Assembly (NCBI RefSeq): GCF_001194135.2
Contig: NC_068993.1
Span: 56,283,210-56,347,209, forward strand
Reading direction: 5' to 3'
Length of the DNA: 64,000 nucleotides
Source of the DNA: Octopus bimaculoides
Lineage: Eukaryota
The translations under genes and the position numbers were made by a program. This document shows positions 2,397 to 27,827 of this stretch, piece by piece. A model generated the notes under the pieces. The model did not search any database. It saw nothing but the letters and a program-made list of their open reading frames with translations, and was not told where the DNA came from. Within the stretch, counting starts at the first letter, position 1. Each line of letters opens with the position of its first letter.

Positions 2397-2589
2397 GATA
2401 TTTTCAGAATGAGATGGCAGTGTAGGTGTGAGAGGCTGGATCTGGTCAGTCTGAAGATAAAACAAGTAGAACATGGGCTAAATGTGGCCAATTTAAATGC
2501 TAAAGGGTTAATTGGCAAAATACAACCATCCGTAAATCTAACAGTATGTACAGACGTTGATATTTGTTTATTCCTGTTACATTCTACAG

Positions 2590-4437
2590 GTCCTAATCAT
2601 GCCTGACAGCCATGATAATTGCCAGGAACTATTGAAGAAGATCCAAGATGAGTGCAAAAACAAAGGCCTTCCTGATTTCATGAAAAGGGAGTTCACCATG
2701 TTGCCGGCAACTACTGCGCAAAACAGTTCCAATATTCCCAAGATACGACTACTGCAATGGAATGTTCTAGCACAAGGTAAATTTCTCCAAATAAAAATTC
2801 TCTATTAGCTTCTGTCTCTTTTGTGCGTCTGTTTCACTAGGCTGTAAGGACATCATTGCCAGCTTCTTTCCGATAGTTTGATAATTTTAGGCTGGTTGTT
2901 ATTGATGTTTAGCTCCAGGTCAAGACCTGACCCAACACCCCTTTCATTGAAAGCGTTCCAGCTATGTTATTATCTTCTTCTGGTTCTGATCTAACAAGCC
3001 TCCATGATTGTATATATGAGTATGTATGTTGAAATATGTATATACATATATAAGGAGGTGTCTTGTGTATATATATATGTATGTATATACATACATACAT
3101 ACATACATATATACAAGATAAGGCATAAATAATGGTCATTATATATTTGTTTATTGTAGTAAATTATGTAGATTTTCACTAAATTAAAGAATATTCTTTT
3201 CTCCTCTACGCGCAAGGCCTGAAATTTTGGGGGAGGGGGGGCAGTCAATTAGATTGACCCTAGTACGCAACTGTTACTTAATTTATCGACCCCGAAAGGA
3301 TAAAAGGCAAAGTTGACCTTGGTAGAATTTGAACTCAGAACGTAAAGACAGATGAAATACTGCTAAGCGTTTCACCCGGCATGCTAACATTTCTGCCAGC
3401 TCGCCCCATCTTAGTAATCTGAACAATATTGTTAGCCTGGTGTACTAAGAGAGAACTTATAAAGTATTTTGCCTGGATTAATAATGACTCTGTATTGTAT
3501 ATACAGATAGACAGACAGGCATATAGACTCGGACAGATAGCTAAGAAAGATTGAACTGTTTTCACTGTTGCATAATTCTGTAATCCAGTTATTTTTCTCT
3601 CTTTCAGCATTGTCAGTAGGAACAGACAATTTCATCTTGTGTCCTATGAGTGCACTTTCTTGGGATACAAGAAAACTTCGAATCCTAGAAGGTATTCTAA
3701 ACAACAATCCAGATGTTATCTGTTTAGAAGAAGTCGATCACTTTGACTATTTATCCTCACATTTGACATCTGTTGGGTATTCTGGAATTTTTCAGCCTAA
3801 ACCAGATTCTCCTTGTCTGTATTTAAGCAACTCTATGGGACCTGATGGTTGTGCCTTATTTTACCGAAAAGATTACTTAAAACTGTTGGATTTCCAGAAA
3901 ATTGGTCTTAAAAGCGAAGATGGGAAGCTGATGAACCAAGTAGCCATTCACTGCTTGTTGAAGATTATTTCTGGTGCTGAAGACGGCAAAGACAAATTCT
4001 CTGTAATTGTCACTCATTTGAAAGCAAAAGATGGCTTTGAGAAACTACGTTACGAAGAGGGTAATTTCATCTTGGACTATATCCATAAGAATGCCAAATC
4101 ATGGCCAGTTATTGTCTGTGGAGACTTCAATGCAGATCCCATGGAGGAAGTCTACAAATCTTTCTCAAAGAGTGATCTTAAACTGTTTAGTGCCTACACA
4201 AAATTGTCAGACGAAGGCAGTGAACCATCATATACAACGTGGAAAGTGCGTGATTCTCCAACAGGACCAGTAGAAATTTGTCGGACTATTGACTACATAT
4301 GGTGCAGTCAAAAGTCTTTAGAAATTCTTTCACTGCTCGATCTCCCCAAAGATGAAGACGTTGGACAAAACCGTCTACCTTCACATTCCTACCCATCTGA
4401 TCATCTTTCTTTAGTTTGTGACTTCCAATTAATCTAA
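2590..4437 (+). CDS. NOCT: Nocturnin (CCR4-like EEP-family NADP(H) 2'-phosphatase); coding exons 2590-2776 and 3608-4437; 5' exon(s) probably upstream of the window
   Basis: Acceptor ctacag|2590, donor CAAG|gtaaat at 2777, acceptor ctttcag|3608. The phase-1 join gives IRLLQWNVLAQALSVGTDNF. EEP/nocturnin motifs are present: DVICLEEVDH, PKPDSPC, GPDGCALFY, THLKA, GDFNA, YTTWK, TIDYIW, YPSDH. Stop TAA 4435-4437. In-frame ATG at 2599. Confidence 0.95.
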
Positions 4438-5635: not shown

Positions 5636-6771
5636 ACAAGTGCCAGAAGATATATATATATACACAAAAAAGTAACAAGTTTACAAGGATTTTTTTTTCT
5701 TTAAATTTTATATGTAAAATATATTTAAACAAAAAAACAAGAACAGTAACAATAACATTTTTTCTTCTTCCATCCTTCTTCTCAAATTTCTTTCAGCAAA
5801 TAAAATAAAAGTTTGTTCTGTATAGATATAAATCTTTCAAGTTAATAGGATCATTGATATCAGCAGAAGTTAACGTACCACAGACAACAACACACCAAAA
5901 TACAGTCACTTCAGTTGCAGTTCATTTCGGATATATACCAAAATAACATATTTATATCCTTGAGGTTTAAAAGGGAGGTGGTAGTGGTGGGCCCTCATTT
6001 TGGCAAGAAATCGGTGTGTATGTGTGAGGAGGAGTTGTCACTTCAAATGAAATAAAAAGATGTGACACAAGGTATTTCATACAAGAAAGTTACCCAGTTT
6101 TTTTTGTTTTCTTTTTTTTTTATTTTGCTTTTCACTGGAAGAATAATTTAAATAAATTTTCGTTTCTTTGGTTAGAAGTAGAGTCGTGAGAGTGCGTGTG
6201 ATTTCACACAGACTCTTGGGAGACCAACAAAAATCTCAAGAAAGCCCAAATTTGAGTGAAGGGTAAATATAAGTGTGAGCACATTTTTGTGTGTAGTTGT
6301 GTGTGTGTTTGAGCTGCCTTAAGGTTACGCATTCAAGATATCAGTAAAGATATGTGATGAAAGCTTGTTACTCGAGTGAGAGTGAAGTTTAACTGTCTCT
6401 CTAAGCTGTGCGATGCTCACACTTCTTGGGATAACAATGAGCAAAGAGACACGAGGAAACCTTGACACTTGAGTGAGAGTGAAACCTATCTGTGTTGTTA
6501 GCTGTATGATACACACTCTCACTAGGAATGAAAGACCTGAGAAAAGTCACATGCTTAAATAAGAGTGAAGCTTAACTATCTGCTTGCACTTACACTCAAA
6601 AAGATAACAGAGATAACATTTAACATGAGGTAAGCATGACATTTGAGTGGGAGTAAACGTCTGTATATATATGTTTAATAGTCACACTCTTGGGAAGTTA
6701 GTGAGTAAAAGGAAACACTTGAGTGTGAGGAGTCATTTGTGTCCAGAGGTTTAACAATGATGGTGACATTC

Positions 6772-9289
6772 TCATGATATATGTGAAGCAGGAGTTGTGG
6801 GTGATGGGGACATCTGAGGAAAGGACGAGGTTACACTGGGGTTCTGCTGGATAAGTTCTCTGTGGCAGGAATAGCTGTGGGGGCTGATTTGAATTGGAAT
6901 ATGGTGTATCAGTGTTGGGTCCATCACTTGGAACACAAGCTGTAAAGTAAAGAAAAATAATTGATTTATTAATTAATAAACAATAATTAATTGTGGCAAA
7001 ACATTTTCTTTAGCCTGATATAAAATCAACCCTAACCATAACGAGAACTACAGTTAAAGAAGGGTCTCAAGACAAATATAAATGTTGAGGGCTTATTATC
7101 AAACCCTAGGTCTACATTACTCCTTAGGGGTCATAAGGCCAGTTTTCTGGTTTCTCTGGTGTATATATTCCTTCCTGGAAAGGGATGCCAGTCTGTCATA
7201 GGATTACTCGTTTTTACCAGCTGAGTGGACTGGTGCGATGTGAAATGAAGTGTTTTGCTCAAGAACACAATGAATCACCCAGTCTAGGAATTGAAACAAC
7301 AATCTTATGCTCATGAGTCCCAAACCCTAACCACTGGGCCATGTGTCTCCATGAGCTGAACTATGATAAACAGCAATCTATCCATAAGGTAGCACATCTG
7401 GCACTTTACTAATTCTGCTGCTCATTACTCTAATGTTAATATTAATCATTGTTCCCCAAAGTTTGGAATGATGTTACCATGGTTATAGAAATCTCTGTTA
7501 CTGGACACAACAATGATTACCTTTTAATGATGATAATAGAAAGGTTTCAAATTTTTGCACAAGGCAGTAATTTTAAGGGGAGGGGTTAGTTAATTACATC
7601 AACTCTAGTACTCAACAGATACTTATTTTATCAACCCCAAGAGGATGCAAAGTAAAGTTGGCCTTGGTAAGATTTGAACTCAGAATGTAAAGAGTCGGAA
7701 GAAATGCCTGTTTTGGCCAACACATTTAACAATTCAGCCACATTCGTGTCTTGTTTCTTTTAATAATAATGGTTTCACATTTTGGCACAAAGCCAGCAAT
7801 TTTGGCGGGGAAGGGGGCAAGTCAATTACATCGACCCAGTGTTCAACCGGTACTTATTTAATCAACCCAGAAAGGATGAAAGGCAAGATCGACCCCAGCA
7901 GACACCTTTTAATAATAATGAAAGCAAATAATTTGTTAAACAGGTGTGAAGTCATTGGTTAATAAAATAAGATTTTTTCCAAATAATACATTATTTACAC
8001 AATTCTTGATTTTTTTATTGCCCACAAGGGGCTAAACGAAGAAGAAACAACAAAGAACATTACACATGGGGCCAAAATCGAGTGAAAATGAATAAGTAAA
8101 ATGAACAAATAAAAGGATGGAACTGTTCCAACATCTAGGATGGTACTTGGTGACAGGAAGAACATTCGATTGCAGAAAATCTGCATCAATAAATTTTGTC
8201 TGCCAGTACCGTGTGACTGGCACTCGTGCCGGTGGCATGTAAAAGCTCCCACTACACTCGGAGTGGTTGGCGTTAGGAAGGGCATCCAGCTGTAGAAACC
8301 ATGCCAAATCAGCTTGGAGCCTGGTGCAGCCTTCTGGTTTGCTAGTCCTCAGTCAAATCGTCCAACCCATGCTAGCATGGAAAGCGGACGTTAAATGATG
8401 ATGATGAACAATAAAAGAGTGATTATGAAGATGATGATTTCTGACACTACACCATTGTATTATAATGTTCAATATACTCTGTTTTACTACTTCTGGTACA
8501 TCACATGCATGCACACGTGTACATCCATGCCCAAAGAATGGAGACCCTTACCTCAATGTAGGGATAAAAAGCTGACTGGTCTGTGATTTTGAAATAAGAT
8601 TCTGTATCAAACAGCAACTTATACACTGTTGTCTTAACGATTTTTTGTCCAGCAAGGAATGCAACATGGCCATCAATGCTACTGGCACTGGAATTAAAGA
8701 AATACAAACATGTCAAAAAAACAATGAGAACAACCCAATCACTAACACACTGATCCTTTCTTCTAAAACATGATAAGCCATGTGGTTTCTCAACAAGAAA
8801 TCTGTTTTGCTTTGGCCCTCTTCTTTCATACTTCAATCCAGCACTGGATTAATCATTAAGCAAAATGATCATGTGCTTAATGAATCAAGGAAAGGAGGGT
8901 ACCACAGAAATGATAAATGGTTTATGGCACAAAAGAAATCACTTCAAACTTGCTAAAACAAGTATTCCAAGTGGTTTATATGATTGGAAATATAATTTCG
9001 AAGTGTTCATGGTGTCATAGAGAGGAGTAGATCAAACCAGTATGAACCAATCAAGACTCAAACTGTACAAAATGATGAGTATTTTTCTTACTTAGAATGT
9101 TCAACTCCTTTTGTTTTTTTGTTTTTTTTTTCAGAAACTGCACTTTAGTGTTAAACAAGTTTCTTACCTTTTCTGAAGCAGTTTCCAAGATCGCTTCTCA
9201 ATCTGAATAAATAATAAGACAGGTACCCCAGTTGCAGGCAGACCTTTGGAAATATCAAATACATGGCTAGAAATTGGAGAAGTTACTTC
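6772..9289 (-). CDS. URAH: 5-hydroxyisourate hydrolase / transthyretin-like domain, divergent; exons 9289-9168, 8687-8552, 6939-6772
   Basis: All three junctions are GT-AG and phase-compatible (2, then 0). Spliced product: EVTSPISSHVFDISKGLPATGVPVLLFIQIEKRSWKLLQKSASSIDGHVAFLAGQKIVKTTVYKLLFDTESYFKITDQSAFYPYIELVFQVMDPTLIHHIPIQISPHSYSCHRELIQQNPSVTSSFPQMSPSPTTPASHIS*. It matches the HIUase/TTR motifs HVxDxxxGxPA, YKLxFDT, FYPYxE and HxP...SPxSY. The first exon has an acceptor and no ATG. Confidence 0.88.
8200..8405 (+). mobile_element. RTE-X LINE 3'-tail repeat (intronic)
   Basis: Matches 19800-19965 and ends in (ATG)n. Confidence 0.8.
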
Positions 9290-10263
9290 CTGCAAAATAA
9301 TGTCGTTATGGAAAGGAATTAATGAGAATTGTAATGGGAGAAAAAAACAGAAAGGGAAATACATGAAGAACTGAGAGGGAAATTAACAAAAAGAGAGAGA
9401 GAGCAGAAAAACAAAGGGAGGGAGTGAAAACTGAAGTCTAAAGGATATATTTCTTTTACATCATTTTCCCCAATCTTTTTATCCAATCTAAATTGGTTAC
9501 AACAGGTATTTTTATAACCATTCTTCGCTGGGATAATTGGATACTACAACCTAAAACACATTCAACCATGAAATAGCAGTTGAGCCTGTTTTGGTTTTGT
9601 TTGCCAAACCAGGGGAAACAGTTATCTACCTTGCTCAATGATATAACACAAGCTGTCATAAATTTCATATATCATCGTCGCCTGTTGCTATAGTAGGTGT
9701 TCAAGGTGTCACGTAGTGGGGGGGTCAATCTGAAATTGTGTGGGTGGGAAGTGAACTTCTTAACCACACAGATATGCCAAAGTGGTTAGTGTTAGGAAAG
9801 GCATCCAACCATAGAAACCACGCCAAAGCAAATAGCAGAGCTTGGCGTCGTCTTCTGACTTCCCAGTTCCTGTCAAACCATCTGAGCCATGCAGGCATGC
9901 TAAATAGATGTTAAATGATGATAATATATACATACATACATAAATATATATATATATTATGTATATAATATAGTAATAACCCTAGCTGGAATTTATAAAT
10001 ATTTTAGATATTTCAAAATATTTATAAATTCCAGCCAAGGATTATTATTATTATTATTGTTATTATTACTATATTCATCCTACATTATATCACCACAGAT
10101 TGGTGCGACCCAAAAAAACTGGTATTTCCAGTTGGCATCATTAGGTTTTGGCTGGCATAATGGAATAGCGTATTCAAAATGTTTCCCCGTAAATGAACTT
10201 AAAGGATATGTATGTATGAATGTATATATGTATGTGTGTGTGTACTCTATGTGTGTATGTATG

Positions 10264-10402
10264 TGTTATAAAACAAAGAACTGTGTGCGATCGGCAGTCC
10301 AGTGTTGGTAGCAGTTCACTGTGAGCCTCTGATATTGAGTGTTGAGTCTTGTGTAATAGTAATAGTAGTGTGTCGTGTAAACACTTTCTTCCCCCTGCTT
10401 CA
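10264..10402 (+). mobile_element. Partial LTR homologous to 51604-51744
   Basis: tgttataaaacaaagaactgtgtgcgatcggcagt...gcagttcactgtgagcc...gagtcttgtgtaatagta...ctttcttccccctgcttc aligns colinearly with the Gypsy LTR. Confidence 0.75.
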
Positions 10403-10404
10403 TA

Positions 10405-10705
10405 AAAAGCACCATTTGATGGCGTGGTCATTGCCACTGCCATCAGAGTGGTCCTGTGCTGGTGGCACGTAAACGGCACCATTTCAGTGTGGTCAATGCC
10501 AGTGGCCTCATGCTGGTCGCACCTAAAAAGTATTTACTACACTCTTGGAGTGGTTGGTGTTAGGAAGGGCATCTAACCGTAGAAACCTTACCAGATCACA
10601 CTGGAACCTGATGCAGCCTCCTGGCTTGCCAGTCCTCAGCCAAACTGACCAACCCATGCCAGCATGGAATGCGGACATTAAACAATGATGATGATGATGA
10701 TAGTG
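10405..10705 (+). mobile_element. RTE-X LINE 3'-tail repeat (intronic)
   Basis: Same family motifs, ends in (ATG)n. Confidence 0.75.
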
Positions 10706-10782
10706 ATGACAACCAGGTCTATCACAGATCTGCTGATGAGCAAAGAAAAGCAAAGCGGAAGAGAACTAGAAGCACAAAAATG

Positions 10783-13700
10783 TTAATATACCATATCTCG
10801 TGTCCCTCGTTTCTTTTTCTTTGTGTGGCCATCGTTACAGTTGATGATGTTGTTGTTATTATTATTGATATTGTAATTATTATCATTATTATTATGAATG
10901 TTGTTGTTGTTGTGGTTAACCATGTTGCTGGTGTTGTGATGAAGCGGAGGGTTGAGTTCCTTTTTGCGTTTGGCTTTCAGGTTGTTAATGTCCCTCGTCG
11001 TCAGCTGTTTGCCAGTCACATTACAGATATACTCTCGGATGTTCTTAGTCTTCATTCCAATGTCTATTAGCCGATATGTCTCCGCGAGGACATGGGGTGA
11101 CAGAGACTGCCTGCGGTTCTCAGGGTACATGTGACCCAGCATCTGATGTGAATGGTTTAAATTGATGGATCGTATCACCATCCTCTGTTTCTCTCGGTCA
11201 ACTGATGCAGCAATTAGAGCAGGACATCCAGTTTTATATGTTCTGAAATTCAAAAGGGAAAACAGGTTGTTATTATTATTATTATCAAGGCAGTGAGCTG
11301 GCAGAATTGTTATAATGCTGGGTGAAATGGTTAGTGGTATTTCACCCATAGACACATTCTGGGTTCAAATTCTGCTGCGGCTGACTTTGCCTTTCATCTT
11401 ACATAATAAATTAAGTACCAGTGAAACACTGGGGTCAATGTAATCAACTCGTCCCCTCCCCCAAAATTTCAGGCATTGTGCTTTTAGCAGAAAGGATTAT
11501 TATGGCAGCTGACTGGACTGGAGCAACATGAAATGAAGTGTTTTGCTCAAGAACACGAGTCGCCGGGTCCAGGAATCGAAACCACAATCTTACGATCATA
11601 ATGCTGAAATCCTAACCACTAAGCCACACACCTCTTGTTCGACCCATATAAGCAGAGAAAAGGTGTTAAAACGATAACGATTTATATTACATTCGCATGT
11701 GGAGTGCGATGCAGTGGTTGACAGAGGAAATCTCTTTTACGGTTTATTGTCTGAACTACTTTTGTAACTCGAGAAGTTTTCACTACGATTGTAGCGGTTG
11801 AGAGGGAGTCGAATATGGTTCATATGCTGAGGTGGCGTTTTCTTAACAGAATAACACAAACTCCAGATTGGAGACATGCAGTAACAATTAAGGTCAGATG
11901 GAAACTCTATATATGATAATTGGTTACAAGTTTTGGTTCAAGTCCAGCAGTTTCGGGGAGGGGGGGGGGCTAAGTTGGTTACATCGACCCCAGTACGCAA
12001 CTGGTATTTATTTTATCGACCTCGAAAGGATAAAAGGCAAACTCGACTTCGACGGAATTTTAACTCAGAACGTCCAGACGGACGAAATGCTGCTAAGCAT
12101 TTTGTCCGGCGTGCTGACGATTCTGCCAGCTCGCCACCTTGTTTGTATATGATAATTAAGATCCTTTTTTTTTTTTTAACATTAAGCACAAACTGAAGGC
12201 AAGTATGGTAACAGATGAGGTTTAGTGAAACGAGAGTTCATATAATTCGTGGCCTTTCCTAACACAAAACCCAGGCTAAACATTAATCATGACGAAATTT
12301 AATGAAAGTTTATCAAATATGCCGATCTTTCCAAACACTAACACTAGAATGAAGAGAATGGTGGTACCGCAATGTGAAGCAAATCAAGCCAGATTCAACA
12401 TCCCTAGAATCAAACACATCTAGAACCATTCCGTCGCTCAAATTATTTAGATATAGTTTGTACAGAACTACGTTATCATACGTGTCCTTTTTTTTTTTTT
12501 TAATAATTCCATTTTACCAACGTTTGTACTTACTATTTGATAACACAGGTAATAATTAGTTTCTTTCAATCTACTGTTTCACTTCTATATGAATGGTAGC
12601 TATCTGTCTAAATACCTGTGTATCTATGTACTAATCATTAATAATATCCGCCAGTCTTTCCATACATATAGCAACATGTCTAAATGATAATAAATTTATC
12701 TGCCTATCTACATAACTATAGATTACACATACACACACAACAACACATAACTATCTACAACATTTGAAACGTATTCGTAGAAAATTTCAGCAAAGAAATA
12801 TCCATTTTTCAGAAAATTATTAGAAAACAGTGTTGGGTGTGAAGAACACACGTCTGTAATCACACACACACAGAGTATTAAGAATAAAATCTTATATCGA
12901 CACCCATGCTTCGTTTTAAGGATATAAAAAGTTAACAACGAGTGATTAACAACAGGTGGGAAAGAGAAAGAGAAAGAGAGACAACAACAGACAGGTATAG
13001 ATTGATCGAGAAGAAGAAAACACCACATGAGATATCTCGCACTAAAAAGAAAAAAAAATCGTGTGTTGCAACCACATGGTTCCAGGTTCGATCCCACTGC
13101 ATGGTATTTTAGGCAAGTGTATTCTGATACAGCCTTGGGTTCACCAACACCATCGAATGAAATTTGCTGAACGGAAACTGCGTCGGAACCCATCGGAGGA
13201 ACCGTTCTTGTTTTGTGTGGAAGTGTGTGTGCGTGTGTGTTTATGTTTACGCTAGTCTAAAACCGGTGTTGCTTATGTTGTGTCCTTTTATGTTCCGTAA
13301 CTTAGCAATTCAACAATAGAGATTGATAGATGAAGTACAGTGGTCAATATGATAATGAAACCAGTAAAAGAAAAAGAATATAAAGAAATGGACGAAATAC
13401 TTTTGGTTGGGTCGTATACCAGGTAAGGTCCGCCGTCTTGAATAACCAAATTGTTTACAAACATATTTGACATATTTGTATTTGAACTTCTCGTCTAAAG
13501 GTTCAACTTTGACACATCGGGATCGGTTAGCTTTGGCAATTGTTTGACAGTCATGGATGGTGAACACAGCATTTGTTAGCTTACAGACAGCTGCTATGGC
13601 AGAAGACAGGGCAGAAAAGTCTTCGAACTCATCACCAGCATTGAGTAAATCCCGACAAGCTTCGTTTGCCCCAATCTCAATCAGAGCTTTGCTCACAAGT

Positions 13701-13966
13701 AAATCCTCGCTAAATTTGTCCGAGCTCTGCTCGTGCTGATGTTGTGGTTGATGGTGGTATTGTTGTTGTTGATGATGATGTTGGTATTGTTGCTGTTGTT
13801 GTTGTTGTTCGAGTGTGGTTGTAGTGAGGACAGTGCCCGCCAGAACGTCAGCGGCCGAGGTGGATGACAGTTGCTGTTGAGGTATGACCACCAGTTCGGT
13901 GACCGATGTTGGAGTTGCAGTTGATTGTTCGGTGGTGAGAAGGCTTACACTCTCTGTCGTTGCCAT
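10783..13966 (-). CDS. Mutator/MULE-derived ZSWIM3_N/FAR1-type DNA-binding-domain protein; exons 13966-13401 and 11242-10792 (or read on to stop at 10783)
   Basis: ATG at 13966 in strong context (aaagATGg) with an in-frame TGA upstream; the ORF-track start at 13987 is a TTG. Donor CAAAA|gtattt at 13400, acceptor ttcag|11242. The join gives AGDEFEDFSALSSAI...FTIHDCQTI...YKYVKYVCKQFG...RPNQKTYKTGCPALI...IRSINLNHSH, the Cys/Cys/His/His pattern of MULE/FAR1/ZSWIM3 N-terminal domains. It is followed by an HTH-like segment (GKQLTTRDINNLK), poly-Q/H and poly-N tracts, and KKKKR. Confidence 0.8.
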
Positions 13967-14137
13967 CTTTGCATGGACAGGGTCCAAGAAGAGCCCTGGT
14001 CAAGGTAATGCTTCCACTGAAGGTGTAAATAAGTGGCCTGGCCGTGAAACTGCTCCAATGATCAACCGGTGTGGAACAGGAATGAAGAGGTCCTCTTAAA
14101 GACATTAGAGAGAGAAAACAAGAGTTATCCCACATTT

Positions 14138-14146
14138 ACTTCCGGT
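14138..14146 (-). promoter_or_regulatory. ETS/GABP-type site ACCGGAAGT about 170 bp upstream of the ATG at 13966
   Basis: Exact ACTTCCGGT on the + strand in a locally CpG-containing segment. Function not shown. Confidence 0.4.
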
Positions 14147-14905
14147 CAGTTCACAGCACAACGTAACCGGGTCATTTCATCTTAGTTGTTTGTTTTCTCC
14201 TTTTCTTCGTTAATTATTTAATTATTTTATTCTTTGCTTGCAAGTTTTTGTAAATTACTTTTCTTTTTGCTTCTAAATTGATTTGTTTAAGAATTTTGTT
14301 TGTAAATTTTATTTAATCATTGTGTGTGTATTATGTTTAAGTGGAGGCGCAATGGTCCAGTGGTTAGGGCAGCGGACTCGCGGTTTCGGTTCCCAGACCG
14401 GGTGTTGTGAGTGTCTATTGAGTGAAAACACCTAATGATCCACGAGGCTCCTGCTGTACTCTTTCACCACAACTTTCTTTCACTCTTACTTCCTGTTTCT
14501 GTTGTGCCTGTATTTCAAAGGGTCTTCATTTGGTCACGTTCCATGAGAGTGTCTTGCTCAGACCATGAACATTTCAGCCGACCCTCATAATAATAAGAAT
14601 TATTATCATACCTGCATTTGTTTTAATGTTAACATTGAAAAGAATCCACATTTTTCATTAAAAAAAAATTTGGACCTGGGTTTGCACCCCCTCCTAAGCG
14701 AATTTTGTTGCTGGGCTATCGCACACACGTGCAACCTTTTTCAAGAAGCAGGCTGCATGAGACATGCCTCATCAAGCGAGCCGCACTACTGTAGAAGATT
14801 AAAGGCAATTTTTTGTTAGGCGTGCCATTCTGAAAGTACAGCAGGTTGCAGTCAGCCTATAGATGTTTGTACATTACACAGGTAACGTCTGACACAGACA
14901 ACTAA

Positions 14906-17805: not shown

Positions 17806-18877
17806 GTACGGCAAGCAGCATATTTGATTCCCAAAACTCAGTAAAGATACTATTAAAACCAGAAAATTGTAAGTAAATTTGTATTAATAACAACACTTAA
17901 ATATATTGAATGAATGTGTTTAAAGCTAAGTGAAATTCTTCGTCCCATTTCACTGTTAATATTCATTAATTTGTCACCTGGCGATCGTAAAAAACGAGAA
18001 GGAAACGAAGAAATGTTGTCACTGAAAAATGCAAATTCTTTTAATGTAATTCTTCCTCGATATGCTTGCAAGGTTGTAGATTACAACTGTTTGATAACTT
18101 CGAGGGAAGAAATTGTGGAGGGAACTTAGATTATTCTTTCTTCAGCCGCTCCGACTTTGTTACCTCTCAAGTTCCGTAACTTAAATCTTTTCCACTTCCC
18201 TTTTTTTCTTTCCCTCTCCTGAATTCAAAAGCTTGAAACGGCAACATTGCGTAATCTACGTTCTCGAAAATGTATCTCTGCAGAATATCATTTAAAAATA
18301 TAGATTTTAAGGATATCTATGAAGAAACAAAGTCGTGAGATAGCAGTATGATCGCCCCCCTCCCCCATTAAAAAAATTGTGATGTTATTTTATTAACGAG
18401 CGTATCTCTGCAAAATTCCAGGGGAAAAAAATGCATTTTTTAGAAAGTTTTGAAGAAACATACAACCAATCAGAGCTCAACTATCAAACTAATTTGGGAG
18501 CTCATAAGAAGTGATGGGCGATAAGATAAGGTCACTTGAGTAAGGAGTGACCATGCTTCTTTTCTCTTTTAAGAATGGTTTTCTTCCTTTTATATCTCTG
18601 AAGAATGGTTATACAGCTTCAATATGATTACCATTTTAATTTCATTCATATAAGTTACATAATCATGACAGCTATAAGACTTTGTCCTTTCTTTGGTCTC
18701 TAGATATCATTTAAAATTTTTAATTGTTGATATGACATAGTGTGTCACATGTGTTTGTATATTGTCTTTATTCTCCTTTTGGTTGAAAAATAAACAGGTT
18801 AATTAACAGAGTACAGTGTCTACAAGTTGATGAGTACCACATATTCCCCTCCATTTTCTTATTGCTATATATAGGTT

Positions 18878-19966
18878 GCCCCTGGGAGCTCCTCTATGCT
18901 GATGACCTTGCACTAATTGCGCAGTCACTATCAGAACTAGAGAAGTTTAAGGTGTGGAAGCAAGGACTAGAATCGAAGGGCCTTAGAGTCAACCTAGCAA
19001 AAACCAAAATCCTAATAAGTAGGAAGGTAGATAAAACACAAGCCCCTTCAGGTAGATGGCCCTGCTCAGTATGCAGTAAAGGAGTAGGTAGTAACTCTAT
19101 AAGATGTACCCGGTGTAAGCTATGGACACATAAGAGGTGCAGCAATATCAAAGGCAGATTAACTACAAAGTTAGTCTTTGNNNNNNNNNNNNNNNNNNNN
19201 NNNNNNNNNNNNNNNNNNNNNNNNNNNNNNNNNNNNNNNNNNNNNNNNNNNNNNNNNNNNNNNNNNNNNNNNNNNNNNNNNNNNNNNNNNNNNNNNNNNN
19301 NNNNNNNNNNNNNNNNNNNNNNNNNNNNNNNNNNNNNNNNNNNNNNNNNNNNNNNNNNNNNNNNNNNNNNNNNNNNNNNNNNNNNNNNNNNNNNNNNNNN
19401 NNNNNNNNNNNNNNNNNNNNNNNNNNNNNNNNNNNNNNNNNNNNNNNNNNNNNNNNNNNNNNNNNNNNNNNNNNNNNNNNNNNNNNNNNNNNNNNNNNNN
19501 NNNNNNNNNNNNNNNNNNNNNNNNNNNNNNNNNNNNNNNNNNNNNNNNNNNNNNNNNNNNNNNNNNNNNNNNNNNNNNNNNNNNNNNNNNNNNNNNNNNN
19601 NNNNNNNNNNNNNNNNNNNNNNNNNNNNNNNNNNNNNNNNNNNNNNNNNNNNNNNNNNNNNNNNNNNNNNNNNNNNNNNNNNNNNNNNNNNNNNNNNNNN
19701 NNNNNNNNNNNNNNNAGTGCCCCTGGACTGGCTCTTGTGCGGGTGGCACATAAAAGACACCATTTCGAGCGTGGCCGTTTTTGTGCGGGTGACACGTAAA
19801 AGCACCCACTACACTCTCTGAGTGGTTGGCGTTAGGAAGGGCATCCAGCTGTAGAAACTCTGCCAAATTAGATTGGAGCCTGGTGTAGCCATCTGGTTGC
19901 ACCAGTCCTCAGTCAAATCGTCCAACCCATGCTAGCATGGAAAGCGGACATTAAACGATGATGATG

Positions 19967-20258: not shown

Positions 20259-23200
20259 AGTGTATTAGCAGCAAACGACAAAATTATGATGAACTCCAAA
20301 CCTAATCAAGTGTTTTCCTGCCATATTAAATATTTACCAGTTTCTGTAACCAAGGTATTTATTTGAACACATTTGTTTTCTATTATCTTTTTCTTTTACT
20401 TATTTCAGTCATTAGACTGTGGCCATACTGGGGCACCGCCTTGAGTTCTTAGTCGAATGTATCTGTAACAAGATTGGAAAGATGACACCAAATAGGCTAG
20501 GATAATGTGTATGTAAGAAGGTTTCAGATTTCAGTGTATGTGGATATAAGAAATATCAGAAGGAAATGTTTTCTTAATAAACATCACAATTCATTCCTTG
20601 ATGGTAAATCACACACGTAGTAGTAAGCACATCAAATCAACAGGGTGTATCGAGACACGAGTTAATTTCTTGATAATCATTAAGGGAGTTAGATTCAGTA
20701 TTTAGTTGCAAATCTAAAATATCCAATGTGCAGGAGTGGCTGGGTGGTAAGAAGCTTGCTTCCCAATCCCGTGGTTCCTGGTTCAGTCCCACTGCATGGC
20801 ACCTTGAGCAAGTGTCTTCTACTATAGCCTCAGGCCGACCAAAGTCTTGTGAGTGGATTTGGTAGACAGAAACTGAAAGAAGCCTGTCATATATCATCAT
20901 CATCATCATTTAATGTCCGCTTTCCATGCTAGCATGGGTTGGACGATTTGATTGAGGACTGGTGAACCAGATGGCTACACCAGGCTCCAATCTGATTTGG
21001 CAGAGTTTCTACAGCTGGATGCCCTTCCTAACACCAACCACTCCGAGAGTGTAGTGGGTGCTTTTTACGTGCCACTGGCATGAGGGCCAGTCCGGCGGTA
21101 CTGGCAATGGCCACAATCAAGTTGTGTTTTTTATGTGCCACACATACATACACGACAGGCTTCTTTTAGTCTTCATCAACCAAATCCATTCACAAGGCTT
21201 TGGTCGACCCGAGGCTATAGTAGAAGACACTTGTCCAAGGTGCCATGCAGTGGGACTGAACCTGGAACCACGGGATTGGGAAGCAAGCTTATTACCACAT
21301 AGCATACAAACTGATGTAGTACATAATGTAAACATTCAAACATTGCTGTGATCTTCCCAAATCCTGCTGCGTTTCGCATGCAGTTTTTGGTCTTCCAAAT
21401 TTGTCTTGGTGTATAAGTTGAACTATCTTATTTGACTGTAAATCCTGGAAGATGTGGTAGTCAGTGGGGGCAAGATCAGGTGAGTACGGTGGATTAAATC
21501 ATTTTCAAATCCTTTCTGATAATTTTCAAAGGGAATAAATTAATACTGTTCAAAATATTGTTTTATCTCAGAAATTTTAGCAACAGTTAATTCATTCGTT
21601 ATTTGATTCATGGAGTTTTTCCTTGTCAAAAGCATCGAACAGGGGTAGAGGACACATTGATATGTCAGCCATTACACATGCTATGTGGCTGAGCGAAAAT
21701 GCTAGTCAGCAAGCCCTTGAGTCATGGGAACAGGGTCATTTCTTTTGATTGTCTCACATGAGGTGCCCAGCAACAGTGAGAACAGCCAGTAGAATGGGTT
21801 TTTTTTACTTTTTTGCAATGGTTCTGATATTCCATTTAGTGGAATTTTGGTGAATGATCACCAAACCAAAAGTTCTTTCATTACAAAACCTAAGATTAGT
21901 AGCCTGAAAAATTGTTATCCTCCTCATCATTGTCATCACCATTGTTGTCATCATCATGATGTTTGTCTTCCCTGCTGACATCGGTCAGATGGTTTAACAG
22001 GAGTTGGCCAGGCCGGAGACTGCACCAAGCTCCACTCTTTTGGCATAGTTTTTACAGTTGGATGCTCTTCCTACTATTAAGAATAGTTTGTCATGGACGT
22101 TTGGATAGATTAGATATTGTGTTTTATTGTAAAAACTGTTGTTATCTTTATTTCAGAGTCAAGTTGCAGATATCTTCTCGGCCTACGATGATATTTTTGA
22201 AATCTATATCAGTGAAAGAGTGGTGGAACAGAATTACACATTTGGGTGAGAGAAACGTTCTTTACTTAAAGGATGGGGAACTTTATGTATTTATTGAGGT
22301 TTGTTAGCAAATGTTGGACAAATGGTACAAATTGATCCATATTGATATAGAGCATAGATTGGTTGAGAGGGTATATATATGTAGGGTTGCAGTGGTTACT
22401 AATCGTTGCTGTTGAAACATGTTTGTAGTATAGGGTTAGTTGATTATGTATTATATAAATCTTGATTAACAAGGTTGATCAATGGCAAGTCCCAAGATAT
22501 ATATGTAATGAGAATGTGGAAGTAAACAGTGTAGTTTATTATAGTTTTACAGTGTCTGTGCTACTACCCTGTCCCCAAGATGACAAGGATATCAACACCA
22601 GACTCTTCTAATTGTTTTATTTGACAGTTTTGTCAGATTTAAGAGCCAAGCATCAGCCAACCATGCAGTGAAGTTTGTAACGGGAAAAACGCTGAATGGA
22701 CAAAAATTGCTTGTCTCTCATGCGAAACCATCAGGTAAATATTCAAACACCTTTACGCATCTATCCCCTTTCTTCTCTTTCCTTTTTCATCCTCTTAGCA
22801 AGACAACTATCTCTCTCCCTCTTTTATACTTTTTAACCTTCTCATAAACTGACACAAAGCCACCTCCCTCAATACTACTCTCCTCACCTGTCAATTGAGG
22901 GGTCTTTGTATTGCTAGTTAATATGGTGACCCCCTACTGGTGCTGGCACCACAAAAAAAAAAAGCACCTACCACACTCTGTAAAATGGTTGGTGTTTGGA
23001 AGGGTGTCCAGCTGTAGAAACCATTCCAGAGCAGACAACAAATTTTGGTACACTTCCTTGGCATACCAGCTTCTGTGAAACTGTCCAACCCATGCCAGCA
23101 TAGAAGGCAGATGTTAAATGATGACAATGATGATGAATCTTTTATTGTTTTATTTGGTCTGCTGTCATAATGTAGCATTGCTTTCAAAAGCTTTTAAAAA

Positions 23201-25970
23201 ATTATATGCACTCCACTATGCTGATGAGTCTGGTGCAGCCCTCCAGCCTTGCCAGCCCTGGTCAAACCGTCCAACCCATGCCAGCATGGAAAACGGATGC
23301 TCAGTGATGATGATGATGTTACACTAGCTCTGCTGTTCCACTGTTATCAGTTATAACAAACTTTTGGCTTCCTTGTTTTGGCAGTAGCGGTGAACCCTGA
23401 GTCTTCCAGATTAATGGTCAGCACCGTTAGGAAACAACTTCAAGAAGAGTTTGGTAAGATTTTCTTGTTTTACTACTTTTGTTTAAGTTTTAATTTAAAA
23501 GAAGATATTTTCTAAAGTTTTTACAAATCAGTATTTACATAAAACCAAAGAAGAAAAAAAAGAAAAAGTTGATGGATTTTTAAAGATTAAGTTGGATGCA
23601 TGTGTAAAGCTGTTGATGATGATGATGATGATTGCAGTGACAGTGAAGAATTCATTCATGCATTTACTCTTTTACTTGTTTCAGTCTTTTGACTGTGGCC
23701 ATGCTGGAGCACTGCCTTTAGTCGAGCAAATCGATGCCAGGACTTATTCTTTGGAAGCCTAGTACTTATTCTATTGGTCCCTTTTGCCGAACCGCTAAGT
23801 TATGGGAACGTAAACACATCAGCGTCGGTTGTCAAGCGATGCTGGGGGGGGGGGACAAACACATACACATATATACGACGGGCTTCTTTCAGTTTCCGCC
23901 TACCAAATCCATACACAATGCTTTGGTCGGCCTGAGGCTATAGTAGAAGACACTTGTCCAAGGTGCCACGCAGTGGGACTGAATCCGGAACCATGTGGTT
24001 GGTAAGCAAGCTACTAACCACACAGCCATTCCTGCACATTTGTTTGTTTGTTTCTTTAATGTCTGTTTATTTGTGGGTTGGACAGGTACTTGCTTCATGC
24101 AGCATTCTATGGCCAGCTGCTCCTCTTGTGGCTATTCGCCAGCTGTTTATCAAGCACACATAACCAACGGAAGAGCATTGTGGGAAATGGACACTATATG
24201 AATGAACAAACGCATGCACCACTAACTCTGTGTGCACGTGTGTGTGTAAATATGTATATCCAATCATAAAATCCTGCTTCAAAATCAATTCCTGTTCAAG
24301 CTTTGCTACGATGAACAAATGGATATTGAAGAAACAAATGAATGTGCGCACACACACACACACACAAATACAGATATTTATATATGTACATTGTTCATTA
24401 TTTACATTTGACAAATATATGTCATCATCTTGTTTGTTAACACGTTTCGGATGATATACCCTCCAGCCTTCATCAGATGTCTTGGGGAAATTTTGAACCT
24501 GGGTTCTCGTTCCTAAGGTATTTTTCGATGTTGTTATTATTATTATTATTATTCAGGTCACTGCCATATGCTCACGGGCATATGGTGTAGTGGTTAAAAG
24601 CGCAGGCTACTAACCCCAAGATTCCGAGTTCGATTCCAGGCAGTGACCTGAATAATAACAACAACAACATCATCATCATCGAAAAATACCTTAGGAATGA
24701 GAATCCAGGTTAAAAACTTCCCCAAGACACCTGATGAAGGTGAAACATGTTAACAATATGTTTCAGCCGAAACATTGTGTTAACAACAAACAAGATAAGG
24801 ACAAATATCCATCAAATGTAAATAATGTAAATAATTCCTCATCTCATAAATATAGAAACTGTATTATATATGTATATGTTGTTTACAGCTTCTACAGATG
24901 GAGAAATTGATGAACTTCTGGAGGAGGCTACTTCTAAAAGATGGATGAAATCGCATCACTCGTCCTCAGAATGTGCTTTTTCTTTGGAACTGACCGATAT
25001 TCTTACAGACACAATGGACTACAAGTAAGAACCAAACAGCTCTAATTGATGTTGTTGAGTCCCAGGTCAGCTCTGATCCACCAGGCCAATAAAGACATTC
25101 CAGCTTTGACCATTCCTTTTATTGAAGCACATTATCTACAACTACATTATGCAACATGTCTTTTTTTTTTTTACTACTTTTTGCTTAAGTTGGGTTGGAT
25201 TTGAGGGATATTTGGCTGCTATTTCTAGCAGGTCTAGCGACCATGTAGCGGTACTCTCATTGGGTGGAATGCTTGTGGTCACCAGATCTAGTGCTAATAT
25301 GGAATTGTGCAATAGAGCAGTGAGCTGGCAGAATGGTTAGCATGCTGGGCAGTGCTCAGTGGTCTTTATGTTTTGAGTTCAGATTCCGCTGGGGTTTACA
25401 TTGCTTTTCATCTTCTTGCGGGGTCAATTAAATAAATATCAGCTGATCACTGGGGCTGGTGTAACTGACCTACCCCGCTCCTACAAACATGCCGGCCTTG
25501 TTCCAAAGTGTGCAAATGGCAGACACACACACGTGTAAAAAGCTAAATGTTTTTGCAGCTCTTAGTTCTTTTACATTCTGAGTTCAAATCTTCCTCATGA
25601 ATGCTTTTTTTCCTTTTTCCCATTCATTCTTTGAGATTGATAAAGTCCAATACCTTGGATGTTACAGTTAAAAACTGACTATTAATGTTATTTATGATGT
25701 ATAAATCATTTAAATATCATTGTACATGTCGTTATAATGCAGTAAAATAGTAACTTCATAAGCAATTCACTAAGGTTCTAAGTAAAGTCAAACTCAGTAA
25801 CCAAGGTCATAAGTAAAGTAATAAGTAAAGAGTTATTTTCTTTTGATGTCTAATTTTTGTTTCTATTTTCTTCCAACAGATACTGGAATGAATTTTTCTC
25901 AAAACAGAAGGAAATCTCGCGGAAATTGAAGATGATTCAAATGCAAACATCAGCTAATGGTTCAAGATGA
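20259..25970 (+). CDS. Single-RRM RNA-binding protein, about 186 aa from ATG 20286; exons 20259-20354, 22157-22245, 22628-22734, 23385-23453, 24889-25024, 25880-25970
   Basis: Six GT-AG exons with consistent phases (0,2,1,1,2). Product: MMNSKPNQVFSCHIKYLPVSVTKSQVADIFSAYDDIFEIYISERVVEQNYTFGFVRFKSQASANHAVKFVTGKTLNGQKLLVSHAKPS...EISRKLKMIQMQTSANGSR*. RNP2-like CHIKYL, RNP1-like YTFGFVRF, and a typical RRM end (LNGQKLLVSHAK). The 5' end is unresolved. Confidence 0.85.
20893..21135 (-). mobile_element. RTE-X LINE 3'-tail repeat, near-identical inverted partner of 19800-19965
   Basis: The reverse complement differs from the upstream copy at only a handful of positions over about 165 nt (by eye). 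Confidence 0.85.
22935..23125 (+). mobile_element. RTE-X LINE 3'-tail repeat, diverged
   Basis: gttggtgtttggaagggtgtccagctgtagaaacc...ccaacccatgccagcat...gttaaatgatgac. Confidence 0.7.
23664..24026 (-). mobile_element. SINE family A, full length
   Basis: Complete body and head. Confidence 0.88.
24391..24830. repeat. Fold-back: two inverted ~170-bp SINE-body arms around one tRNA-like head (24575-24645)
   Basis: The left arm ending ...ttattcaggtcactgcc (24565) is the reverse complement of ggcagtgacctgaataa... (24639). Complementarity continues through cgaaaaataccttaggaa, ccccaagac and tgttaaca. Confidence 0.85.
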
Positions 25971-27714: not shown

Positions 27715-27827
27715 TCATACAGCATCTTTCTTGTTCATAGGTTCACTATCGTCATCATGCGAGTTGCTGCTGAGAACCTCTCTAATGCGGCTAACCAGAC
27801 CATCGTCGTCGTACATTGATCGGGACC
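27715..27827 (-). CDS. DNAJA3: DNAJA3 alternative terminal exon B ([37 protein letters not shown])
   Basis: Long polypyrimidine tract and ttctgtag| acceptor, phase 1, open to [13 protein letters not shown] resembles the [11 protein letters not shown] motif of exon A. Confidence 0.65.

Follow-up and report, generated by a model that had tools for sequence, protein, structure and literature searches.

A cephalopod gene joining a transposase-type DNA-binding module to a HIUase/transthyretin-like domain

Do two sets of exons on one strand of an octopus chromosome, the first related to the DNA-binding heads of transposases and the second to an enzyme of purine catabolism, belong to a single gene, and if so is its product still an enzyme? 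The question is raised by a stretch of 64,000 nucleotides (nt) of NC_068993.1 from Octopus bimaculoides, here called the window, in whose numbering (1-64,000) all coordinates are given; the exons are on its minus strand. An initial annotation, made from the letters alone, had proposed one chimeric gene in which a Mutator/ZSWIM3-type domain is spliced, over the junction 10792/9289, to a domain of the 5-hydroxyisourate (HIU) hydrolase (HIUase) and transthyretin (TTR) family. RNA, gene structure, gene order and purifying selection all bear this out, and what the gene encodes is, on balance, probably a nuclear, DNA-binding and oligomeric regulator, not an enzyme: a conserved host-transposase fusion.

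One spliced gene

Five minus-strand exons with GT-AG borders and compatible phases (0, 2, 0, 2, 0) join into an open reading frame (ORF) of 1443 nt and 480 amino acids (aa), the initial annotation having expected about 480, and the five-exon fused structure is as good as certain. The details on which that annotation leaned are present in the sequence. Exon 2 ends ...CGA GAT ATG/gtatat (last exon base 10792, GT at 10791-10790), a phase-0 donor just ahead of a stop codon as had been claimed, so that unspliced read-through adds only V-Y-stop, with the TAA at 10785-10783. Exon 3 begins, also in phase 0, with GAA GTA ACT after ttttgcag at 9289 and has no start codon of its own, its sole ATG being out of frame and no in-frame Met occurring in it. 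Neither AATAAA nor ATTAAA is found on the minus strand anywhere in the 1502-nt intron 10791-9290, which covers the interval from 10783 to 9290 for which their absence had been noted by eye. The protein across the fusion junction reads ...KKKKRGTRDM/EVTSPISSHVFD..., and the poly-Q and KKKKR features that had caught attention are there as a Q/His tract at aa 53-80 and a KKKKRG at aa 330-335.

Both halves of the joined protein are recognized by Pfam, the profile check that had been advised: ZSWIM3_N (PF21599) at aa 109-221 with 48.8 bits (cut-off 27.8) and Transthyretin (PF00576) at aa 345-452 with 85.1 bits (cut-off 25.3), the latter over profile positions 1-108 of 109. DUF5575_N is also above its cut-off in the N half (37.5 bits versus 24.1). 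The FAR1 model itself is unmatched by the octopus protein and has matches below cut-off in the Capitella protein P0007 and the transposases P0008, P0010 and P0014.

Transcript contigs from four independent studies of 2015-2023 (X9, X1, X7 and X10) follow an identical path, from the 5′ untranslated region (UTR) and exon 1 to 11242-10792, 9289-9168, 8687-8552 and from 6939 into the 3′ UTR, and each includes exon 4. Raw reads from three deep RNA-seq runs (X21, X22 and X23, sampled at about 6 %) also cross 10792/9289, the junction at which such reads had been called for. At the start of exon 3, which 14 raw reads cover, one continues into the intron and is unspliced, and among the loose ends listed there all ten (seven from X21 and three from X23) read ATATCTCGTGTCCCTCGTTTC..., the reverse complement of the end of exon 2. 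At the donor 13 raw reads stop exactly at 10792 and two, both from X22, read through. The exon-5 acceptor is reached by just one or two raw reads, and all four contigs contain exon 4. With coverage in the bin 9408-9691 about zero in the raw-read runs and the junction reads reaching exon 2, the fused mRNA is the main transcript. The outcome that would have spoken for two genes, namely an absence of joining reads together with a first exon belonging to the HIUase part, was looked for and did not hold, and only 2 of 15 donor reads run through. A candidate for such an exon, 9668-9630, is ruled out: the stretch around it has the same near-zero coverage and nothing other than exon 2 is seen spliced to exon 3.

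Conservation among cephalopods

There are five close relatives in the protein database and all five read across the fusion junction. An Argonauta hians 'hypothetical protein' of 555 aa and an Acanthosepion pharaonis 'uraH' of 397 aa have both Pfam domains, and a third type of relative is a 265-aa cuttlefish-like transcript fragment that crosses the junction. Two Octopus vulgaris models (P0001 and P0003) end ...LLQKSLCSK and stop, exon 3 being joined straight to exon 5 out of frame. This ending (window 6925-6939) would come from skipping of the 136-nt exon 4, reflecting either an error in the models or a minor truncating isoform. P0003 in addition bears an unrelated N-terminus that resembles a retroelement. 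In current annotations the gene is either given the wrong label ('uraH') or cut short (the O. vulgaris models, which lack exon 4).

The genomic loci of Argonauta (L002, with a gene of 4.4 kb) and cuttlefish (L001, with a gene of 24.7 kb) have the same five exons, and intron positions, phases and GT-AG sites are identical in octopus, Argonauta and cuttlefish, including those of the phase-0 fusion intron, which in cuttlefish is ...GAG ATG/gtaagt ... ccag/GAA ATG. The gene order DnaJ - RRM - fusion gene - Exo_endo_phos is common to the window and Argonauta, the Exo_endo_phos-family neighbour having 71 % identity over 285 aa to its counterpart at the Argonauta locus.

Selection was estimated by the method of Nei and Gojobori. 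Versus Argonauta omega is 0.042 for the N half and 0.063 for the TTR half, values that are rough since dS is about 1.4 and near saturation; versus cuttlefish pN is 0.08-0.10 and synonymous sites are saturated. The sole parts that vary among the species are the poly-Q/His N-terminus and the poly-Asn linker, whose length differs widely, and the basic motifs KAKRKKE and KKKKRG are conserved, the latter as KKKKK in cuttlefish. These comparisons indicate that both halves are under strong purifying selection and have stayed joined since the lineages of octopods and decapodiforms parted about a quarter of a billion years ago. Thus two further checks proposed at the outset, for the fusion in other cephalopods and for dN/dS over both halves, came out in its favour, with the same exons in Argonauta and Acanthosepion and omega of 0.04-0.06 versus the former. 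Searches for more relatives with an alignment of the cephalopod and Capitella proteins, and then with the TTR domain alone, gave nothing new; the second missed even the known relatives, so that no absence from squid, Nautilus or other molluscs can be concluded.

Table 1. Parts of the fusion gene and its neighbours in the window
Feature	Positions	Strand	Remarks
5′ UTR, minimum extent	13967..14367	-	X9 contig to 14367, X10 to 14195, X1 to 14099
Exon 1, coding, aa 1-189	13401..13966	-	ATG 13966-13964; donor CAAAA/gtattt 13401/13400, used in 4/4 transcript contigs; intron position same in Argonauta and cuttlefish; variable N-terminus, poly-Q/His tract, first half of WRKY-GCM1/ZSWIM3_N domain with zinc ligand Cys170
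Poly-Q/His low-complexity tract, aa 53-80	13727..13810	-	EQQQQQQQYQHHHQQQQYHHQPQHQHEQ; species-variable in length and sequence
Intron 1, phase 2	11243..13400	-	repeat-rich; spliced out in 4/4 transcript contigs
Exon 2, aa 189-339	10792..11242	-	acceptor tttcag/AA 11242; donor GATATG/gtatat 10792; second half of zinc finger (Cys195, His219, His221), three-helix bundle, KAKRKKE, poly-Asn linker, KKKKRG
Three-helix, helix-turn-helix-like bundle, aa 238-284	10957..11097	-	helices confident in both AlphaFold2 models
Poly-Asn linker (aa ~290-329) and basic KKKKRG (aa 330-335)	10804..10941	-	KKKKRG a putative nuclear localization signal (NLS)
Intron 2 (fusion intron), phase 0, 1502 nt	9290..10791	-	removed in X1, X7, X9 and X10 contigs
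Exon 3, first TTR/HIUase exon, aa 340-380	9168..9289	-	catalytic His348 kept
Exon 4, second TTR/HIUase exon, aa 380-425	8552..8687	-	His387 replaces catalytic Arg; in 4/4 contigs
Exon 5, coding, aa 426-480 and TGA	6772..6939	-	His438 kept
3′ UTR, minimum extent	6123..6771	-	lengths of X1, X7 and X10 contigs suggest end ~5770
Exo_endo_phos-family gene, downstream	2587-4431	+	shared with Argonauta
RRM-domain gene, upstream	20923-25025	+	shared with Argonauta
DnaJ gene, upstream	27718-27834	-	shared with Argonauta

The ends of the transcript are less sharply defined than its junctions. The transcription start is uncertain because 14236-14500 is repeat-rich. At the other end the X9 contig stops at 6123, adjoining an AATAAA at 6124, and the X1, X7 and X10 contigs, which continue some 230 nt past 6000, are about 350 nt longer, to about 5770; there may be two poly(A) sites, which would give 3′ UTRs of two lengths. 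Three extra bases (TGT on the plus strand) at window 10847 in exon 2 are present in the contigs of all four studies and in some raw reads. They are a length polymorphism that gives one more Asn codon in the poly-Asn linker, the protein being 481 aa in those animals.

SINE-like (short interspersed element-like) repeats occupy intronic and flanking positions (8272-8555, 9692-10259, 10544-10700, 11396-11679, 11964-12247 and 14236-14500), several of them sharing ...CATCATCATTTAACGTCCGCTTTCCATGCTAGCATGGGTTGG...; their RNA depth is hundreds to thousands of times that of the exons and they give rise to hundreds of spurious 'joints' in read mapping. Elsewhere in the window a transposon-like ORF (18841-19179) resembles a 618-aa ORF in the Argonauta locus.

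The two halves of the protein

When 1.84 billion representative proteins were searched exhaustively by profile, the nearest non-cephalopod relatives of the N domain were ZSWIM3-like proteins that have a ZSWIM1-3 RNaseH-like/MULE (Mutator-like element) core and a SWIM finger, and so are Mutator-like transposases or derivatives of them. The homology extends over about 175 residues, comprising the zinc finger and the helices after it. An alignment of 21 homologs shows no variation at Cys170, Cys195, His219 and His221, nor at R232, D273 and N276 of the helical part (N-domain positions R147, D188 and N191). AlphaFold2 with this 21-sequence alignment (mean predicted local distance difference test, pLDDT, 85; predicted template modelling score, pTM, 0.64) gives a confident model, in which a three-helix bundle comes after a sheet of four strands and helices. 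When the model was compared with the Protein Data Bank (PDB) by Foldseek, the Aft2-DNA complex was at the top (probability 0.99, E 6e-3) and plant WRKY domains came next (probability 0.4-0.5), hits that are mutually consistent with E-values that are weak; the three-helix bundle has a weak match to the DNA-binding domain of RcsB. A sequence search of the PDB with the N domain gave nothing meaningful. Aft2/Rcs1 and FAR1 are MULE-derived fingers of WRKY-GCM1 type with an insert (Babu et al. 2006, PMC1702500).

The Pfam models MULE, ZSWIM1-3_RNaseH-like and SWIM have no match in the 480-aa protein. The possibility that a remnant of a transposase core persists in the introns or elsewhere was rejected, as tblastn with the transposases P0008 and P0013 and with the paddlefish P0010 matches only exons 1-2 of the whole window. 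By these comparisons the N half is the DNA-binding head of a ZSWIM1/3-type MULE transposase, a C-C-H-H finger of WRKY-GCM1 type with a three-helix bundle, whose catalytic core has been lost.

The C-terminal half, unambiguously a HIUase/TTR domain, has its PDB sequence matches among HIUases (3e-20 to 1e-16), with the reconstructed HIUase-TTR ancestor at 3e-20, zebrafish HIUase at 1e-16 and transthyretins more distant. Two introns inside it coincide with introns of the canonical HIUase gene of the annelid Capitella, and the TTR half is a copy of a HIUase gene that is without only the ancestral first exon and its start codon. The active site of Klebsiella HIUase is made up of His7, Arg41, His92, Tyr105 and Ser108, the last being the C-terminal residue, whose free carboxylate helps place the substrate and stabilises the Arg, and deletion of the tetrapeptide YRGS strongly reduces catalysis (PMC8272043); this C-terminal tetrapeptide serves as a HIUase signature (PMC3646786, PMC8272043).

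How far the cephalopod domain departs from this can be gauged from 132 HIUase/TTR family domains, the counts being those of the usual residue. Cephalopods keep the His7 position (H in 128/132) as His348 and the His92 position (H in 131/132) as His438. At the Arg41 position, in D-G-R, they have His387 where 118/132 have R and only 6/132, three of them cephalopod, have H. Toward the end of the domain exon 5 encodes Cys450-His451-Arg452-Glu453-Leu454 where T-Y-R-G-S is expected: the Cys for the Thr before YRGS (T in 122/132), the His at the Tyr105 position (Y in 124/132) and the Glu at the Gly107 position (G in 122/132) are each unique to cephalopods, the Arg of YRGS is kept (HREL), and the Leu at the Ser108 position, otherwise the chain end (S in 93/132), is followed by a tail of 26 Pro/Ser/Thr-rich residues. 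All these changes are common to octopus, argonaut and cuttlefish. Of the features of a HIUase, then, the fold and two catalytic His residues are there and the catalytic Arg and terminal Y-R-G-S are not. Canonical HIU hydrolysis has probably been lost, because the Arg has become His387, the Tyr has become His451 and the 26-residue tail removes the terminal carboxylate.

Function, origin and parallels

With the HIUase signature degenerate, 'a regulator, not an enzyme' seems a better reading than the wording of the initial annotation. Such a protein would enter the nucleus by means of its basic motifs KAKRKKE and KKKKRG and, to go by the families to which they belong, the zinc finger and helices of its N half would bind DNA. 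The TTR-like domain would assemble as a dimer of dimers, the arrangement known from HIUases and transthyretins, bringing together up to four DNA-binding heads, which could favour cooperative binding at clustered sites or the bridging of DNA, and the Q/H-rich N-terminus may offer regulatory contacts. In addition, the pocket of the TTR-like domain, now remodelled and His/Cys-rich, may bind a new ligand or metal. A more specific proposal is speculative, and doubtful as a whole. It holds that the domain does more than oligomerise, with His348, His387, His438, Cys450 and His451 from two chains lining what was once the active site, where the two dimers meet, and that the protein would be a tetrameric transcription factor gated by a purine/urate-like metabolite or a metal. 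Cephalopods, an annelid, copepods and parasitoid wasps would then have arrived time and again at the same combination of DNA-binding head and HIUase-derived sensor.

Several points weigh against a DNA-binding regulator that is no longer an enzyme. With both catalytic His residues still in place, the domain may have residual or altered catalysis. The substitution S108A alone barely affects the Klebsiella HIUase (PMC8272043), and the C-terminal argument therefore depends in part on the tail together with the changed Tyr and Arg. Foldseek gave weak E-values for the N domain, the best being 6e-3, and the full-length AlphaFold2 model, from a 5-sequence alignment, has a mean pLDDT of 37 and is unusable except for helices 238-285. 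Expression is low in the three raw-read runs, which makes the junction counts small, though all agree.

It is also conceivable that the WRKY-GCM1/ZSWIM3_N module interacts with protein or RNA, without DNA binding, and that the product is an oligomeric scaffold. To our knowledge no function has been established for vertebrate ZSWIM3, the structural matches to DNA-bound domains of the WRKY class are weak and no sequence relative was found in the PDB, all of which would suit a scaffold. It is nevertheless unlikely, as intact MULE transposases, in which this module recognises transposon ends (PMC1702500), share the zinc ligands, the basic loop residues and the helices without change, and the NLS-like basic motifs are conserved. 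A working HIUase, as the name uraH in the cuttlefish record would have it, to which the transposase-derived part adds targeting or regulation only, is quite unlikely. The Transthyretin domain is strong (85 bits) and nearer HIUases than transthyretins, both catalytic His residues (348 and 438) and the Arg of YRGS remain, and copepods have fusions of a Brinker DNA-binding domain (BrkDBD) to a HIUase with the complete catalytic set, so that a DNA-binding domain with an active enzyme may exist elsewhere; set against this are the His in place of the Arg41 equivalent (6/132 domains), the cephalopod-unique changes of Tyr105 to His and Gly to Glu, and the 26 residues that continue past the substrate-positioning carboxylate of an enzyme in which deletion of the tetrapeptide strongly cuts catalysis (PMC8272043).

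Two other explanations would deny that there is a domesticated fusion gene at all. If the fusion were an artefact, whether of read-through or conjoined transcription of neighbouring genes or of a mis-assembled contig, the two X22 reads that pass the 10792 donor, to give a ZSWIM3_N-only protein ending ...RDMVY, and the truncated O. vulgaris models could be understood. This is largely refuted already and highly improbable: the five-exon contig is agreed on by four independent assemblies, raw reads cross the junction, the HIUase part lacks a start codon and a first exon with no coverage upstream of exon 3, and junction, phase and frame are conserved in octopus, argonaut and cuttlefish, the O. vulgaris truncation being an exon-4 skip in the model. 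As little credence can be given to a mobile element, a MULE that captured a fragment of a host HIUase in the manner of a Pack-MULE. Its N domain does group with transposase N-termini and repeats fill introns and flanks; however, there is no transposase core in the window, exon coverage is at single-copy depth, unlike that of the repeats, the flanking genes are the same in Argonauta, and both halves have kept an omega of about 0.05 across a long divergence.

As to the origin of the fusion gene, in the tetrapod route a transposon lands in or near a gene of the host, splicing joins it to host exons, and in time only the fused transcript is left (Cosby et al., bioRxiv 10.1101/2020.05.07.082677). 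The cephalopod gene layout fits this route; the N-terminal module of a MULE would have been spliced onto exon 2 of a HIUase copy via the ancestral phase-0 first intron. As is expected of a host-transposase fusion, the two domains are in one spliced mRNA and ORF and the gene is immobile, orthologous and under purifying selection. The tetrapod cases KRABINER, SETMAR and PGBD3-CSB (Cosby et al.) likewise have a transposase DNA-binding domain spliced to host exons, with the fused transcript alone remaining with age and under purifying selection, whereas the cephalopod partner is an oligomerisation domain derived from an enzyme, and not KRAB or SCAN, and the transposase part is N-terminal. The survey of Cosby et al. 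covers tetrapods only, and Mutator, MULE and transthyretin are absent from its text.

A protein with the same order of domains is encoded by Capitella teleta (ELU04385.1, CAPTEDRAFT_223509). Its 428 aa comprise a ZSWIM3_N/FAR1-like finger, helices, an acidic linker and a TTR domain with degenerate catalytic residues. Its origin is probably separate and convergent, because its fusion point is inside one exon, none of its N-domain introns is shared with cephalopods, its domains rank near the bottom of the lists of similarity to the cephalopod ones (36 of 43 and 134 of 140), and neighbour-joining bootstraps for a clade of cephalopods and Capitella are 4/200 and 0/200, with domains that are short and saturated. 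Directly upstream of the Capitella fusion gene (8001-10510), and head-to-tail with it, a canonical 136-aa HIUase (THILD, DGR, HYHVPLLLSP) is encoded at about 7011-7455 of L003 (KB302363.1), which suggests that the fusion there derives from a tandem HIUase duplicate.

Further combinations of this general kind were seen in other animals. Copepods (Neocalanus and Calanus transcriptomes; P0040, a 28-member cluster) have a Brinker DNA-binding domain with a HIUase in which the catalytic set, including YRGS, is intact. In the parasitoid wasps Diachasmimorpha, Copidosoma and Chelonus (P0039/P0044/P0080/P0065) a Cys/His-rich N-terminus that has no Pfam match is joined to a TTR domain ending YRG[TVM]D[RS] or YRDILR. 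The copepod and wasp proteins thus also pair a C-terminal HIUase/TTR domain with a known or likely nucleic-acid-binding head, and differ from the octopus protein in the families of that partner. In the paddlefish P0010 (Polyodon spathula XP_041088089.1) ZSWIM3_N is joined to a Nucleoplasmin domain, a second case of a transposase head with an oligomeriser. The Nucleoplasmin domain forms pentamers.

The finger of the octopus protein is of the same MULE-derived, insert-containing WRKY-GCM1 class as those at work in host regulation in plant FAR1/FHY3, yeast Aft1(Rcs1)/Aft2 and Candida Rbf1 (PMC1702500), none of which has a TTR/HIUase domain. FAR1/FHY3 keep a degenerate transposase core and SWIM finger, whereas only the N-terminal module is present in octopus. 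Vertebrate ZSWIM1/ZSWIM3 and the ZSWIM3-like MULE transposases of crustaceans and fish (P0008, P0013 and P0014) have the same C-C-H-H ligands and helices but run on into RNaseH-like/MULE and SWIM, in the place of which octopus has its TTR-like domain. Vertebrate transthyretin is likewise a HIUase duplicate in which active-site residues and YRGS were replaced and the fold was kept. Transthyretin is, however, small, has a signal peptide and is secreted as a hormone carrier, with other substitutions, while the octopus domain would be intracellular, is fused to a DNA-binding module, is His/Cys-rich with a long tail and would have an independent origin; its place at aa 340-454 of 480, behind that module, and its greater nearness to HIUases in the PDB search set it apart from the transthyretin class. 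In the plant TTL, a fusion of OHCU decarboxylase and HIUase (PMC2834698), the HIUase domain is also C-terminal in a longer protein, but that enzyme is bifunctional, with both activities in a single pathway.

No paper was found on a fusion of MULE/ZSWIM3-type and TTR/HIUase domains or on the cephalopod gene. The initial annotation's statement that it knew of no description of this architecture holds for the searchable literature, and unremarked models exist in databases ('hypothetical protein' in Argonauta and Capitella and 'uraH' in cuttlefish). How such a gene arises is already established; its interest lies in the domain that serves as partner, the lineage, how deeply it is conserved and the apparent recurrence of a DNA-binding head with a HIUase. 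Domesticated transposase DNA-binding domains are known to give rise to new transcription factors; the cases so far documented are mostly vertebrate, plant or fungal and have standard regulatory partners, and here the partner is a former enzyme of purine catabolism. It would be the second independent HIUase duplicate, beside vertebrate transthyretin, to have traded catalysis for a new role, now inside a DNA-binding protein. The parallels in annelid, copepods and wasps suggest a recurring design in which a stable tetramer, perhaps with a ligand pocket, is used as a module of a regulator, and that the gene has changed so little between octopus and cuttlefish points to an important function, in animals whose gene regulation is known to be unusual.

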